From Macrostomum lignano (taxonomy: Eukaryota), in the NCBI GenBank assembly GCA_002269645.1, contig NIVC01003008.1:1-64000 (forward strand): a stretch of 64,000 bases of DNA. The letters run 5' to 3'. The number at the start of each line of letters is the position of its first letter. The first letter of the stretch is position 1. A program made the translations under genes and the position numbers. A model generated the notes under the pieces. That model had not been told where the DNA came from and did no database searches. It saw only the letters and a program-made list of their open reading frames with translations. Positions 13,493-17,881 of the stretch are shown here, one piece after another.

Positions 13493-13843
13493 CCTGCACG
13501 TTGACCAGAGTCTCAGTCCTGACTGACTGCAAGCGCAGCAGGCCCTGACACTGGTAGCGCCCGCTCTGTCCCTGACCAACGCTGTCCACCAGCAGACTGC
13601 CGTTAGGTGTTGCGGACACGCTGACGTTAGCAAACGCTGCCTGCGTTTCGTCCACATTGCCGCAGGTGCCCTTGGCTGGTTGGCAGCGGATGAGCTTGCC
13701 TAGCGGTTGGCCAGCTTGGGCAAAGCTCCAGATTATGTAGTCGGGCGGTGGTTCGAGTCCGCAGTTCAAGTTGAGGCTGGACAACTCGCGAACGGTGATG
13801 CTGGGCGGTAGTTGCTGGGTGACTTTGAGCTCGGTTGAGGAAA
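13493..13843 (-). CDS. Gene 2 (IgSF paralog) coding exon 2: N-terminal V-like Ig domain
   Basis: Acceptor catctcgcag|TTTCC and donor CAGG|gtgaga; 351 nt, phase 1-1. Translation VSSTELKVTQQLPPSITVRELSSLNLNC...YIIW...RCQPAKGTC...NGSLLV...SGRYQCQG...VNVQ has the Ig Cys/Trp/YxC motifs and aligns to gene 1 exon 2. Confidence 0.9.
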
Positions 13844-13975
13844 CTGCGAGATGATGGAGTGGCGAGTGTGGGATGCTGTTATTAACTAAATGAGATCAAA
13901 ATCAACCATGTGTCAAATTGTACAGGAACTTTGGATTATTCGCAAGAAATCTGGTCATTATGTGTCTAAAATGAA

Positions 13976-14220
13976 AATGGTCATTTCTATTCAAATCTGG
14001 TCATTTCTATCCAAATCTGATCATTTCTATTCTAATCTGGTCATTTCTATCCAAATTTGATCATTTCTATTCTAATCTGGTCATTTCTATCCAAATCTGG
14101 TCATTTCTATTCTATTCTGGTCATTTCTATTCTAATATGGTCATTTCTATTCAAATCTGGTCATTTCTATCCAATTCTGGTCATTTCTATTCAAATCTGG
14201 TCATTTCCACCCAAATCTGA
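13976..14220. repeat. 20-bp minisatellite (TCTGGTCATTTCTATYCWAA)
   Basis: About 12 copies, read directly. Confidence 0.95.
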
Positions 14221-14699
14221 AAATCGATTATGATTATATAAAACTCATAATTTGCAAACAATAAATTCTGACTAATTCGGAGTCAATTCACTGTTGGTGT
14301 TATCAAGGCCGCCGCTATGCCTGCCGTGTTTGCTAAGCGGCTGACTTATGTTGACTTTATTAAGCGCATTGAGCCCCCAAAGCCGAGTGTGTTACGCGAC
14401 ACCCACTTCAGCGCATCTGAATGTTATTAAGAACCAGAGGTGGGCTGACTGAAGGAAACCCTTTTGTGTTGAAATTTAAGCACCTCACGATATTTAGCAA
14501 CCCGTGTAATCAAATATACAGCTTGGTACTTAGCTGGACTTAAGCCTTTGTACACACCCCCATAGTTTCCTCAACAAGTGATGGAGCTGAGGGACTTTTT
14601 ACTGCCAGACACGAGACTCAATTGTTTAGCTTTAGTCAAGAATACAAGGCATGATATCAAACTTTACACGTCGTTTTTTAGTATAAATTCTTTCTGAGT

Positions 14700-15270
14700 C
14701 TACACTTCTCCCACATCTACCTCTCCTCTGTCTACCTCTCCCATATCTACTTCTCCCACATCTACCTCTCCTCTGTCTACCTCTCCCATATCTACTTCTC
14801 CCACATCTACCTCTCCTCTGTCTACTTCTCCCATATCTACTTCACCCATATCTACCTCTCCTCTATCTACCTCTCCCATATCTACTTCTCCCATATCTAC
14901 CTCTCCTCTACCCGTTGGCTTGCATAAGACCGAAATTTCACATCGTAGAGAACTAAATAAAACAAGGACCATGCAGAATTTTCGGCGTTGTGAAATTTCG
15001 GTCTTATGAAGCCCCTCCCCTCTACCTGCCTCTCCCACATCAACCTCTCTAGTATCTACCTCGCCATTATCTACCTCTGCCCTATCTACCTCTACCCTAT
15101 CTACCTCTCCTATATCTACTTTCTTATATATACCTCTGTCATATCTACCTCTCTCATATCTACCTCTCCCCTATCTACCTCTCTCCTATCTACCTCTACC
15201 TTATCTACCTCTCCCCTATCGACTTTTTCCTATCTACCTTCCAATATCTACCTCTCCATTATCTACCGCA
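14700..15270. repeat. 15-bp ATCTACCTCTCCC-type minisatellite in two blocks (14700-14910, 15030-15270)
   Basis: Direct reading. Confidence 0.9.
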
Positions 15271-15944
15271 GCCCTAACTACTCTTAAACCTTCGCTCAAA
15301 GGAGATTCTCTCTATTTGTTTCATGTCTTAAGCGGTAACCCGTTTGAATTTAGGACTTCACAGTGTGGCAATATTGAAGTGTCCCAGATACATGACGCGG
15401 AACAGACCCAGGCAGAAATTGGATCTCTTGAACCGCTCCAAAGCTCCCTAGTTCGTGTCCGTCAATGCACAATCTTTCTATTTTTTTCATAATAACAATA
15501 TGCCCCGAAGGGCCTCTCAGAAATCCTGTATTCCAGCTGATTGCATAATCACAGGCATGTGAGAATATCCAAGCTAGGATGCATCACAAACACACACACC
15601 TCAGTTTCTATTTAATCTCCTTCTCTCCATTGTTTGCTCAGATGTGGTTTTCGGTGCGTGTGTGTTTAATCTTTAGCATCAATATTCGAGAGTCGGATTG
15701 GGTAACCAAGGGAAGGCACCTTGGCAGCAGTGATGTCACAGTGTGATGAGACACTTCAAGGCAAAGACTGCTTTGTCAGGTGTCAATGACTGACAAAACA
15801 GTAATAGGAGAGAGAAGACTGACACAGTTTTATAAGCCGTTGCTCTCCACGGATGGTTGAGCGTGAATGTCCCGAGTCCGAGATGATTGCTAGCTGATGT
15901 ATCATGTAGGCTTCGAAAAAAATTGAAAGTGATGCAGACAGACA

Positions 15945-16445
15945 CTGAAACAGACAGACTAGATGCTAAGACACTGACAGACAAAAATATAGACAGAGAT
16001 ATATACTAAGACATATTGACTGACCCTTGCGATATTAAGAAAGACACACAGACACATAGACAGACAAATAGACAGACAAATAGACAGACAAATAGACTGA
16101 CACATAGACTAACACATAGACAGACACATAGACTGACACATAGACAGACATAGAGACACATAGACTGACACATAGAGACACATAGACTGACACAGACAGA
16201 CACATAGACAGACACATAGAGACACATAGACAGACACATAGACAGACACATAAACAGACACATAGACTGACTCATAGACAGACACATATACTGACACATA
16301 GACACATAGACTGACACATAGACAGACACATAGACAGACACATAAACAGACACATAGACTGACTCATAGACAGACACATATACTGACACATAGACACAGA
16401 CAGAAACATTGACAGACACTAAGACACATAACCTAGAAAGACACA
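15945..16445. repeat. ~12-bp GACACATAGACA minisatellite
   Basis: Direct reading. Confidence 0.9.
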
Positions 16446-17268
16446 CAGACACTAAGGAAGCCAGTAAAAAAATAACTGAATCTTTCCTACCTACGAGTAC
16501 AATTACATATTTCTTGATTCTCATATTCCTATATGGAATAGAAGGACTACGTTATTTTGTATCAATATTTTTAATAAGCAATTGTATACCCCAAACAGGA
16601 CCATCATACCCCAAAAATTAAGGCTGGTATTATAATATAAGGGTAGGCAGAGCCCAGTTCGACACTGTATGAAAGCCACACTAAAATTCTAAAAATAAGT
16701 CTGCTTGTTGGGTAGGTGCTTGCACGGGAATAAAATTGTCCCTTCAACTTGTCAACAGGTGGAACCCCGCCTCATCGTAAAATGGGGCTGCTCTCCACCC
16801 CCACCTCCCCTCATTGCCCCATCACACATCTCAAACTCTTTAAACTTCCATCCGCGGATGCTGGTATTAACAAAGTTGCAATTGGTAGCAATAATAGTTG
16901 GTATATGCATAGATAGTAACAAAAATATTATTAACGAGTCGTATAGAAATCTCAATTTATGAAAGACTGACGGACGCACTGCAATCGGCTCTTCTGGACG
17001 CAATTTCAGAAACGATAAAAACTGCTGCTTTTTGAGCAGTGCGTGTGACAGCGGGTTTGAGCTCTGTGGCTGTGGGGCAGGCAGCTCATTAATTATTAAT
17101 CATCTCCGATGAGGGCAGGGCGGTGAAACTGCTTCCCAGATCCTGTCTTTCTCTGCCTCTGCAGCAATCAGCCAATCAACTGGTGAGACAATCGGACCCC
17201 CCCCCCTCGGATGGGTTGCGGCTGCGGGCCCTCTGTTCTTCTGGCTAGGGGTTGAGACCTCCTAGTGG

Positions 17269-17544
17269 GATAGATAGATAGATAGATAGATAGATAGATA
17301 GATAGATAGATAGATAGATAGATAGATAGATAGATAGATAGATAGATAGATAGATAGATAGATAGATAGATAGATAGATAGATAGATAGATAGATAGATA
17401 GATAGATAGATAGATAGATAGATAGATAGATAGATAGATAGATAGATAGATAGATAGATAGATAGATAGATAGATAGACAGATAGATAGATAGATAGATA
17501 GATAGATAGATAGATAGATAGATAGATAGATAGATAGATAGATA
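17269..17544. repeat. (GATA)n microsatellite
   Basis: Direct reading. Confidence 0.99.
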
Positions 17545-17796
17545 TGCTTCCAATCCAGAAGACTATACTATCAGGTGTCCCTGGCGTTCACCAGTCCATC
17601 CAGTTCAGCCATACCCTGCATTGCTTTCAGCATCTCTTATTTCCAGTTTTGCATTCTCTGGACTTCAAAACTGCCTGCACGCAGCGGCTCTCGCAGCCCC
17701 AGTGAAGCCGCCTTCGGCGGGGACCGGAAAAAGCGCAAAATTAAAAAAAGAGATCCAGGCTTCATCAAGCCCACAGCAACTACTAAAAAAACTTAC

Positions 17797-17881
17797 CGCC
17801 AGAAATGAAGCAGGAACAGAAGCTGAAAAAGCAGAACAGCCCGATAGGTGCCGATAGAAGCAATTGTTGCAGACGAGTCAT
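17797..17881 (-). CDS. Gene 2 coding exon 1: signal peptide MTRLQQLLLSAPIGLFCFFSFCSCFISG
   Basis: ATG at 17881, a hydrophobic core, and a perfect donor GGCG|gtaagt in phase 1 that matches the phase-1 acceptor at 13843. An upstream acceptor (ttccacag|) lies at 17913. Confidence 0.72.

Follow-up and report, generated by a model that had tools for sequence, protein, structure and literature searches.

The question raised by this locus is whether a short module of two exons, encoding a signal peptide and a single Ig domain, marks a second receptor gene next to a complete one, and whether the two belong to an array of Echinoid-like receptors with a variable first Ig domain (Ig1), as a sequence-only reading had proposed. 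In the 64-kb stretch of Macrostomum lignano DNA analysed here (hereafter the window), we found two head-to-tail paralogous IgSF genes, both on the minus strand. The explanation that we favor, with a probability of about 0.7, is that these are two tandem paralogous genes of Echinoid architecture and that the remaining exons of the second gene lie beyond the left edge of the window.

Two genes on the minus strand

Gene 1 runs from 63144 to 25981 (37 kb) and gene 2 follows it on the same strand. Their exons, and the spacer between them, are listed below.

63096..63144, minus strand: gene 1 exon 1, 49 nt, signal peptide MLLLFCLIWILEFHIG, phase 1, donor GGAG|GTGAGA
59683..60033, minus strand: gene 1 exon 2, 351 nt, phase 1-1, V-set Ig1 with QCYHALGRC
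29979..34494, minus strand: gene 1 exons for Ig2-Ig7 and FN3, splice phases consistent
34494-34174, 33919-33788 and 32908-32306, minus strand: the first three of these Ig2-Ig7/FN3 exons
31984-31615, 31064-30928 and 30697-29979, minus strand: the last three of these Ig2-Ig7/FN3 exons
27892..28087, minus strand: gene 1 transmembrane exon (…AAIILVTCGCAAVVATLCLSLVCLCVRRC…), with model P0004 linking these exons
25981..26090, minus strand: gene 1 last exon, ending …RRVVYEVVV*, stop codon 25983-25981
17882..25980: spacer from the gene 1 stop to the gene 2 ATG, 8.1 kb
17797..17881, minus strand: gene 2 exon 1, 85 nt, ATG at 17881, signal peptide MTRLQQLLLSAPIGLFCFFSFCSCFISG, phase 1, donor GCG|GTAAGT
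13844..17796, minus strand: gene 2 intron 1, length 3953 nt, with many tandem arrays, among them (GATA)n at 17269-17544
13493..13843, minus strand: gene 2 exon 2, 351 nt, phase 1-1, V-set Ig1 with the Cys-x6-Cys pair RCQPAKGTC

This list leaves out at least one gene 1 exon in the interval 29979-28087, as well as the exon(s) for the cytoplasmic part near 26.5-26.9 kb. The Ig1 exon of gene 1 has the acceptor ...CCATTGCAG| and the donor |GTGAGT, and two UniRef models (P0005 and P0016) join it to exon 1. The ectodomain contains seven pairs of B-strand and F-strand Cys residues and an fn3 match. Gene 1 is a complete gene encoding seven Ig domains, an FN3 domain and a transmembrane segment.

Gene 1 was compared with Mlig000261, an RNA-seq-derived, full-length gene model of 1091 aa (PAA74021.1 / A0A267FJS4), which has homeologous copies g2, g3 and g4 and an ectodomain with the same seven Cys pairs and fn3 match. 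The concatenated exons of gene 1 are colinear with it over 900 aa (31% over 904 columns, E 4e-99), and the two proteins have an identical YEVVV* end (…RKVIYEVVV* in Mlig000261), a class II PDZ-ligand-like tail for which PDZ binding is predicted. Since gene 1 ends like Mlig000261, gene 2 lies beyond the end of gene 1. The ATG of gene 2 is located 8.1 kb downstream of the gene 1 stop codon, and gene 2 is therefore a separate tandem gene. The spacer carries foldback-like inverted arrays of a 23-bp unit.

The shared strand, the layout of a signal exon followed by an Ig1 exon and the 351-nt phase 1-1 Ig1 exons, all pointed out in the sequence-only reading, could be read directly on the minus strand. 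The gene 2 Ig1 exon is bounded by the acceptor ...TCTCGCAG| and a strong donor, CAGG|GTGAGA. An M. lignano UniRef model (A0A1I8IWL4; P0001) is 99% identical to the gene 2 signal peptide plus Ig1 and connects the two exons exactly where the splice had been proposed (…CFISG|VSSTELK…). GC3 is 0.72 in the Ig1 exons of both genes, while most of the window has 40-50% GC, and the probability that the gene 2 Ig1 frame is open by chance at this base composition is P = 0.0245.

Similar Ig1 domains fall into four lineages: gene 1 (A0A1I8IQT8), gene 2 (A0A1I8JNQ6 and A0A1I8JNN3), Mlig000261 (PAA74021) and A0A1I8IK65. The M. lignano family thus comprises at least four diverged lineages of Ig1. Among these, gene 1 groups with Mlig000261 and gene 2 with A0A1I8IK65, so that the tandem neighbours are not mutual closest relatives.

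Gene 2 beyond its second exon

No Ig2 or later exon of gene 2 was found in 1-13492 by tblastn with gene 1 and Mlig000261, by the family HMM or by Pfam scans, and the same scans gave no further coding exon among the best-looking ORFs of the spacer and flanks. The place expected for the Ig1-to-Ig2 intron of gene 2 is occupied by an 8.9-kb satellite.

1..8865: 118-bp satellite, 75 copies, 99% identical, running off the left edge of the window

To call gene 2 a receptor is an extrapolation from exons 1 and 2, the part inside the window. Gene 2 has a signal peptide of its own and a V-set Ig1 of the type specific to this family; in the explanation that we favor, its Ig1 exon would be spliced over a long satellite-filled intron to exons for Ig2-Ig7, FN3 and the transmembrane segment past the left edge. 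The product may act at junctions as an adhesion or recognition receptor, with its N-terminal V domain making the contact in trans.

A rather unlikely alternative is that gene 2 is a truncated 5′ duplicate, comprising a promoter region, the signal exon and the Ig1 exon, that survives as a non-functional or untranscribed relic. The lack of downstream exons in 1-13492, with the satellite in their place, is what such a relic would show, but the equivalent Ig1-to-Ig2 intron of gene 1 is itself 25.2 kb long. Every database model of the gene 2/A0A1I8IK65 subtype stops after Ig1; the ML2 models of gene 1 likewise end there, for technical reasons. The GenBank annotation of Mlig_3_7, which is based on RNA-seq, lists no protein for either gene; for gene 2 this would also fit a relic, but the absence is a weak negative because that annotation set left out transcripts overlapping repeats (PMC5730564). 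Exact-sequence look-ups found no contigs matching the UniRef models P0001, P0002 and P0021. Logan-derived proteins were also absent, but this carries no information, as they are lacking even for Mlig000261, whose model comes from RNA-seq. Against a relic, the gene 2 frame is still open at 33% identity to its paralog with a coding-type GC3, its acceptor and donor still match the consensus, and all the fold-critical residues are kept (the B and F Cys, the Trp, the extra Cys pair and the NGS). Moreover, there is a second copy of the locus with about 93% identity, and in its model P0003 the final 69 residues of the domain are read in the same frame. The other model of this second copy, P0002, has a frameshift midway through the domain.

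It is very unlikely that gene 2, together with A0A1I8IK65, encodes a signal peptide and one V domain as a small secreted or lipid-anchored ligand or decoy. Such a product would require either a short terminal exon or a transcript that reads through the donor and thereby adds GEMCSVLLLLLFESLAIH*. Among 1.84 billion proteins there is no full-length protein with this Ig1 subtype, whereas the other subtype has one, and the read-through frame is open for 18 codons and hydrophobic. However, the strong donor of the Ig1 exon is kept, the read-through tail is CTG/CAG-type low-complexity sequence that is probably too short and interrupted for a typical GPI signal, and the fragmented ML2 contigs explain the missing long models equally well. 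An extended form of this idea, a two-subtype system, would have A-type loci (gene 1 and Mlig000261) encode full-length Echinoid-like receptors and B-type loci (gene 2 and A0A1I8IK65) encode a signal peptide with a disulfide-stapled V domain. We regard it as improbable to a similar degree; if true, a B-type ligand or decoy encoded beside its receptor gene would tune Echinoid-type adhesion.

The Ig1 type and its divergence

The Ig1 domains of gene 1 and gene 2 are 32-33% identical. BLASTP aligned them at 32% identity over 107 aa (E 1e-14, 51.6 bits), and their Smith-Waterman score of 120 compares with 25.0 ± 4.2 (maximum 48) for 2000 shuffles (z = 22.8). In the same alignment test, the other six Ig domains of gene 1 scored 21-54. 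The HMM search that had been suggested for this Ig1 type, when run on the window, gave 164 bits on each of the two Ig1 exons and revealed no third: a single domain in any other ORF reached at most 10 bits, and the best other whole-ORF score (25 bits) belonged to a multi-Ig exon of gene 1. The motifs cited earlier as shared (ELSSxxLxC, PxYxxW, the Cys-x6-Cys pairs QCYHALGRC and RCQPAKGTC, NGSL and G-x-Y/F-x-C-x-G) were all present in both domains in the alignment. The proposal of a tandem, diverged paralog is thus borne out at the level of sequence, and the comparisons support the two Ig1 exons being true, anciently diverged paralogs on the same strand.

There is next to no chance that the resemblance is merely generic Ig-fold similarity: both domains do score weakly against the Pfam Ig models and phase 1-1 is typical of Ig exons, but the BLASTP result, the shuffle test and the specificity of the HMM refute this reading, the score being more than twice that of any other gene 1 Ig domain, the 51.6 bits between the two Ig1 domains exceeding the best PDB sequence matches (17.7 bits for gene 1 Ig1 and 21 bits for gene 2 Ig1) and the Cys-x6-Cys insertion being found in both. 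PDB sequence searches with either Ig1 returned generic matches with E 0.003 or worse. Phase 1-1, the usual phase of Ig-domain exons, was rejected as evidence of paralogy because it is generic. The equal 351-nt length of the Ig1 exons is coincidental, because their alignment needs several indels and the Ig1 exon of a third paralog, Mlig000261, is 360 nt long. The duplication is old, given the 33% identity and the fact that both genes of the pair resemble an unlinked paralog more than they resemble one another.

The fold of gene 2 Ig1 was modelled using AlphaFold. A run with only the two Ig1 sequences (pLDDT 37) was discarded, and addition of the other lineages gave a model with pLDDT 91.3, in which there are ten strands, namely A, A', B, C, C', C'', D, E, F and G. 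Strand C' spans residues 48-54 and C'' residues 59-62; Cys53 falls at the end of the former and Cys60 within the latter. Cys27, Trp38 and Cys98 are conserved in the Ig1 alignment. A Foldseek search against the PDB gave at least 2,000 matches (E <= 0.001), the best 50 of which were all V domains of antibodies, nanobodies or T-cell receptors with a TM score of about 0.7; Pfam V-set and ig matches to both Ig1 domains were weak. The modelled C' and C'' strands, the B-F disulfide and the Trp of strand C identify gene 2 Ig1, as modelled, as a V-set domain.

The Ig1 type is characterized by Cys-x6/7-Cys on the C'-C'' hairpin, NGS/T on strand E and G-x-Y-x-C-E/Q-G/A on strand F; a single exon of phase 1-1 encodes it, preceded by a signal exon of phase 1. 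This signature is present in gene 1, gene 2, Mlig000261 and A0A1I8IK65. Mlig000261 belongs to the same family, with Cys-x6-Cys, FxNWT, NGSL and DGxYECEG in its Ig1, and has the same exon plan as the window genes, a phase 1 signal exon followed by a single phase 1-1 Ig1 exon; it differs in sequence, being 31-35% identical to gene 1 and 25% identical to gene 2 Ig1. A profile search of 1.84 billion proteins found the whole Ig1 domain only in M. lignano. The suggestion of lineage specificity agrees with this result, which is nevertheless to be read with the caveat that a fast-evolving domain of 116 aa is near the detection limit.

The idea of an array with variable Ig1 was overstated, because the locus has just two genes and Ig1 diverges about as much as the whole protein. 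Gene 1 and Mlig000261 are 35% identical in Ig1 and 31% over the whole protein; therefore, Ig1 is not specially diversified. As to a cluster, the tandem pair is real, but no tandem partner of Mlig000261 was found within 10 kb in the two copies examined, and its neighbours, unlike those in the window, are unrelated genes on the other strand. The tandem pair is an ordinary gene duplicate and not a special diversifying receptor array.

Like the window genes, Dscam1 and the clustered protocadherins have repeated N-terminal recognition modules on one strand. The window, in contrast, has two separate transcription units with their own signal exons and without shared constant exons; no set of alternative variable exons feeding into a common constant part of one transcript was found in it. 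That the two modules are alternative 5′ cassettes of one gene, as their equal strand, exon layout and phase might suggest, is contradicted by the exon order and can practically be dismissed: the gene 2 exons lie downstream of the gene 1 constant exons and of the stop at 25981, the last exon of gene 1 is homologous to that of Mlig000261, and the 64 kb hold no more than two Ig1-type exons, both preceded by an ATG and a signal exon of their own.

Likeness to Echinoid and meaning of the pair

Drosophila Echinoid (Ed) is a homophilic adhesion molecule of adherens junctions, and its EIIV tail binds the PDZ scaffolds Canoe/afadin and Bazooka/Par-3 (PMC3172166, PMC7286890, PMC2712996, PMC3899232, PMC8572004). 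The Ed ectodomain consists of seven Ig domains and FN3 (PMC3172166, PMC7286890), and EIIV is a class II PDZ ligand (PMC2712996, PMC3899232). Gene 1 and Mlig000261 likewise have seven Ig domains followed by one FN3 domain, a single transmembrane helix and a class II PDZ-ligand-type E-Φ-Φ-V tail, EVVV instead of EIIV. Gene 1 encodes a type I membrane protein with a signal peptide, these extracellular domains and a short YEVVV tail. The tail of Mlig000261 is about 110 aa, unlike the longer intracellular domain of Ed, which is roughly 300 aa. Of gene 2, Ig1 is the one ectodomain part visible in the window. The presence of a diverged paralog parallels that of Fred (Friend of Echinoid) for Ed (PMC3172166, PMC2712996, PMC8572004).

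The term "Echinoid-like" is therefore supported for gene 1 in architecture and tail motif, but did not extend to named sequence matches: in word-indexed searches, the best of these were generic IgSF proteins (hemicentin-1, contactin, Robo/SAX-3, Dscam, turtle and CD22), and a PDB search with Mlig000261 also gave generic IgSF matches only. Nectins and the Kirre-nephrin proteins (SYG-1/SYG-2) share with this family an N-terminal V-set domain and, next to it, a CD80-like C2-set domain (PF08205, residues 148-237 of Mlig000261 according to Pfam) and a PDZ-binding C-terminus, here predicted from the sequence; a role in junction adhesion may be proposed by analogy. Nectins differ in having three Ig domains, and the weak matches of SYG-2 and JAM-A to Mlig000261 (about 1e-12 to 1e-13) do not stand out from those of many other IgSF proteins. 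Echinoid is not regarded as a direct nectin homologue (PMC7286890). A literature search on Macrostomum IgSF/Echinoid or IGCM-1 found nothing relevant.

Tandem and polyploidy-derived IgSF paralogs are common. The pair reveals no new mechanism, and nothing points to programmed or unusual diversification of Ig1. It adds to the M. lignano catalogue an unannotated or poorly annotated Echinoid-like IgSF gene pair, whose existing models are fragments or frame-shifted, and it delimits a small family in this flatworm that can be recognised by its Ig1 signature and in which the YEVVV tail is conserved. This family could serve studies of adherens-junction adhesion in a transgenic, regenerating flatworm.

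Exons of gene 2 and their likeness to gene 1

The interval 13493-17881 is bounded by, and contains, exactly two minus-strand exons, both belonging to gene 2. The corresponding pair of gene 1, its upstream paralog on the same strand, is listed with them.

17881-17797, minus strand: gene 2 exon 1, 85 nt, ATG at 17881, donor GCG/GTAAGT
13843-13493, minus strand: gene 2 exon 2 (Ig1), 351 nt, phase 1-1
63144-63096, minus strand: gene 1 signal exon, 49 nt, phase 1
60033-59683, minus strand: gene 1 Ig1 exon, 351 nt, phase 1-1

Exon 1 of gene 2 encodes a typical signal peptide (MTRLQQLLLSAPIGLFCFFSFCSCFISG), and exon 2, lying between the acceptor TCTCGCAG and the donor CAGG/GTGAGA, is translated as VSSTELKVTQQLPPSITVRELSSLNLNCGLEPPPDYIIWSFAQAGQPLGKLIRCQPAKGTCGNVDETQAAFANVSVSATPNGSLLVDSVGQGQSGRYQCQGLLRLQSVRTETLVNVQ. 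GC3 is 0.72 in each of the two Ig1 exons, in a window of mostly 40-50% GC, and 116 open codons, as in the gene 2 Ig1 exon, would arise by chance at the given base composition with P = 0.0245; by GC3 and open frame, this exon looks coding. The window is Macrostomum lignano DNA, and a UniRef protein, A0A1I8IWL4 (145 aa), is 99% identical to the gene 2 signal peptide and Ig1, splices the two exons at the exact predicted junction and ends where the Ig1 exon ends. The observation that the gene 2 exons are real and coding-looking is confirmed. Two further models, A0A1I8JNQ6 and A0A1I8JNN3, represent another gene 2 copy with shifts of frame; where in frame, this copy is about 93% identical. This fits the neopolyploid, highly duplicated genome of M. 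lignano, with 180 Mb in blocks at least 95% identical (PMC5730564).

The signal peptide and Ig1 of gene 1 are contained in A0A1I8IIA5 and A0A1I8IQT8, and its later exons in A0A1I8FAN3, with repeated frame errors. Public ML2-based models for these loci are faulty (A0A1I8IIA5, labelled P0005; A0A1I8FAN3, P0004; A0A1I8JNN3, P0003): one has a non-coding-looking ORF of about 560 aa fused onto the gene 1 signal peptide and Ig1, and one is called "FCGR2 protein", a name resting solely on an Ig domain. No protein of gene 1 or gene 2 was found in the GenBank Mlig_3_7 set. This is a weak negative, because transcripts that overlapped annotated repeats were left out of that set (PMC5730564) and 56% of the 64-kb window consists of tandem arrays scoring 200 or more in TRF, far above the 15% that simple and tandem repeats make up in the genome on average (PMC5730564).

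The two Ig1 domains align over 107 residues with 32% identity (BLASTP, E 1e-14). Their Smith-Waterman score is 120, against 25.0 ± 4.2 in 2000 shuffles (z = 22.8) and 21-54 for the remaining six Ig domains of gene 1. In tblastn, the sole match of the gene 2 Ig1 in the window was the gene 1 Ig1, and an Ig1-type HMM scored 164 bits on each Ig1 exon and at most 10 bits per single domain on other window ORFs, the top whole-ORF score there (25 bits) being that of a multi-Ig gene 1 exon. PDB sequence searches with the two domains gave top matches of merely 17.7 and 21 bits. By these comparisons, the likeness of the two Ig1 domains is above chance. The proposal of a tandem, diverged paralog is borne out for the visible part of gene 2, and all the motifs quoted in its favour were found in both domains. 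Two of its other arguments carry little weight. The Ig1 exons do match in length, yet the equality is coincidental, since the alignment requires several indels and the exon of a third paralog has 360 nt. Likewise, both exons are phase 1-1, but so are Ig-domain exons in general.

(GATA)n microsatellites lie 3′ of both signal exons, at 62329-63086 in gene 1 (starting 10 nt past the donor) and at 17269-17544 in gene 2 (starting about 250 nt past it). The matching placement may be coincidental in an array-filled genome.

The Ig1 domain type

An exhaustive profile search of 1.84 billion representative proteins with the Ig1 domains of both genes gave 48 matches. Whole-domain, high-scoring matches among them were confined to M. 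lignano proteins.

M. lignano: gene 1 models and gene 2 models
M. lignano: Mlig000261, an unlinked paralog, residues 51-138, directly after the signal peptide
M. lignano: A0A1I8IK65, 143 aa, signal peptide and Ig1 only

Most of the other matches were large vertebrate IgSF proteins that share only a generic F-G strand motif, matched in many of their repeats; a few vertebrate V-domain proteins align over most of the domain, with E values of 1e-5 or weaker. Pairwise scores divide the type into two subtypes: gene 1 with Mlig000261 (35% identity; FxNWT and DGxYECEG in common) and gene 2 with A0A1I8IK65 (34%; YIIWSFA and RCQ in common), with 25-33% identity across the subtypes. The extra Cys-x6/7-Cys pair is present in all four lineages.

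AlphaFold modelled the gene 2 Ig1 confidently from a six-sequence alignment (pLDDT 91.3), with strands A, A′, B, C, C′, C″, D, E, F and G, and all 50 Foldseek matches listed were antibody, nanobody or TCR V domains. The strand set and these matches indicate that the modelled Ig1 is a V-set domain. Cys53 ends strand C′ and Cys60 lies within C″, so that the extra cysteines, on opposite strands of the C′-C″ hairpin, could form a disulfide.

Architecture of gene 1

Gene 1 is a complete gene. Its later exons were assembled on consistent splice phases, except across 28088-29978.

34494-34174, minus strand: gene 1 later exon
33919-33788, minus strand: gene 1 later exon
32908-32306, minus strand: gene 1 later exon
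31984-31615, minus strand: gene 1 later exon
31064-30928, minus strand: gene 1 later exon
30697-29979, minus strand: gene 1 later exon
28087-27892, minus strand: gene 1 TM exon
26090-25981, minus strand: gene 1 last exon, ending …RRVVYEVVV*

The exon ending at 29979 is in phase 0 and the TM exon from 28087 in phase 1, so that 28088-29978, a stretch of mostly 16-bp and purine-rich repeats, must contain one or more further small exons. Elsewhere, tandem arrays yield long spurious ORFs, such as those at 39770-41930 with up to 718 aa.

The encoded protein carries seven Ig domains and a single FN3 domain and is colinear with PAA74021.1 (Mlig000261g4, 1091 aa) over 904 columns (31% identity, E 4e-99). 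PAA74021.1 is a model of full length that stems from Mlig_3_7, an annotation based on RNA-seq (PMC5730564). Gene 1 (25981-26090) and Mlig000261 (L001 51152-51232; …RKVIYEVVV*) have the C-terminal motif V-x-Y-E-V-V-V* in common. Drosophila Echinoid likewise combines seven Ig domains with an FN3 domain (PMC3172166, PMC7286890), its C-terminal EIIV binds Canoe/afadin and Bazooka as a class II PDZ ligand (PMC2712996, PMC3899232), and it has a paralog, Fred (PMC8572004). By its residues, the E-V-V-V tail is of the class II PDZ-ligand type and resembles EIIV. Gene 1 thus resembles Echinoid well in architecture, in domain count, tail type and the presence of a paralog. The label "Echinoid-like" given in the sequence-only reading holds for gene 1 and the family where it describes architecture. 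Among named proteins, the two genes gene 1 and Mlig000261 match generic IgSF members (hemicentin, contactin, Robo/SAX-3, Dscam, turtle and CD22).

Extent of gene 2 and size of the family

Extrapolating from its 5′ end of signal peptide and Ig1, we consider gene 2 probably (roughly 70%) a full receptor. In 1-13492, tblastn queries of gene 1 and Mlig000261, the family HMM and Pfam found no Ig, FN3, TM or tail exons of gene 2 past Ig1. This would suit a truncated relic, the main rival, which we regard as rather unlikely; the retained open frame and splice sites speak against it. The intron between Ig1 and Ig2 spans 25.2 kb in gene 1 and 6.8 kb in Mlig000261, which makes a long, repeat-filled intron after the gene 2 Ig1 plausible. 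A 118-bp satellite (75 copies, 99% identical) occupies 1-8865, the expected place of that intron and the later exons, and continues past the left edge of the window. An Ig1-only product, of the form of the A0A1I8IWL4 and A0A1I8IK65 models, is a long shot. The gene 1 stop codon at 25981, 8.1 kb upstream of the gene 2 ATG, excludes a single gene that uses the two signal and Ig1 modules as alternative cassettes.

Between the two genes, a 23-bp unit (GGATCTGAGAGGGTGTCATTTGG) forms arrays in opposite orientation at 19744-20737 and 22007-22754, foldback-element-like, with arms of at most 265 nt, 90-94% complementary, and a core of about 1.3 kb. A third array of this unit lies inside the long intron of gene 1 (54403-54693).

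The "cluster with variable Ig1" proposed earlier was overstated. The window holds two Ig1-type genes, and no second Ig1 was found within 10 kb of the Mlig000261 copies, whose neighbours are unrelated genes in opposite orientation. Between gene 1 and Mlig000261, Ig1 (35% identity) is no more diverged than the whole protein (31%). Judged from the pairwise scores, neither of the two adjacent genes is the sister of the other, so that their duplication is old and not part of a recent expansion at this locus. Gene 2 is a member of a small family of M. lignano IgSF receptors that are Echinoid-like by architecture.
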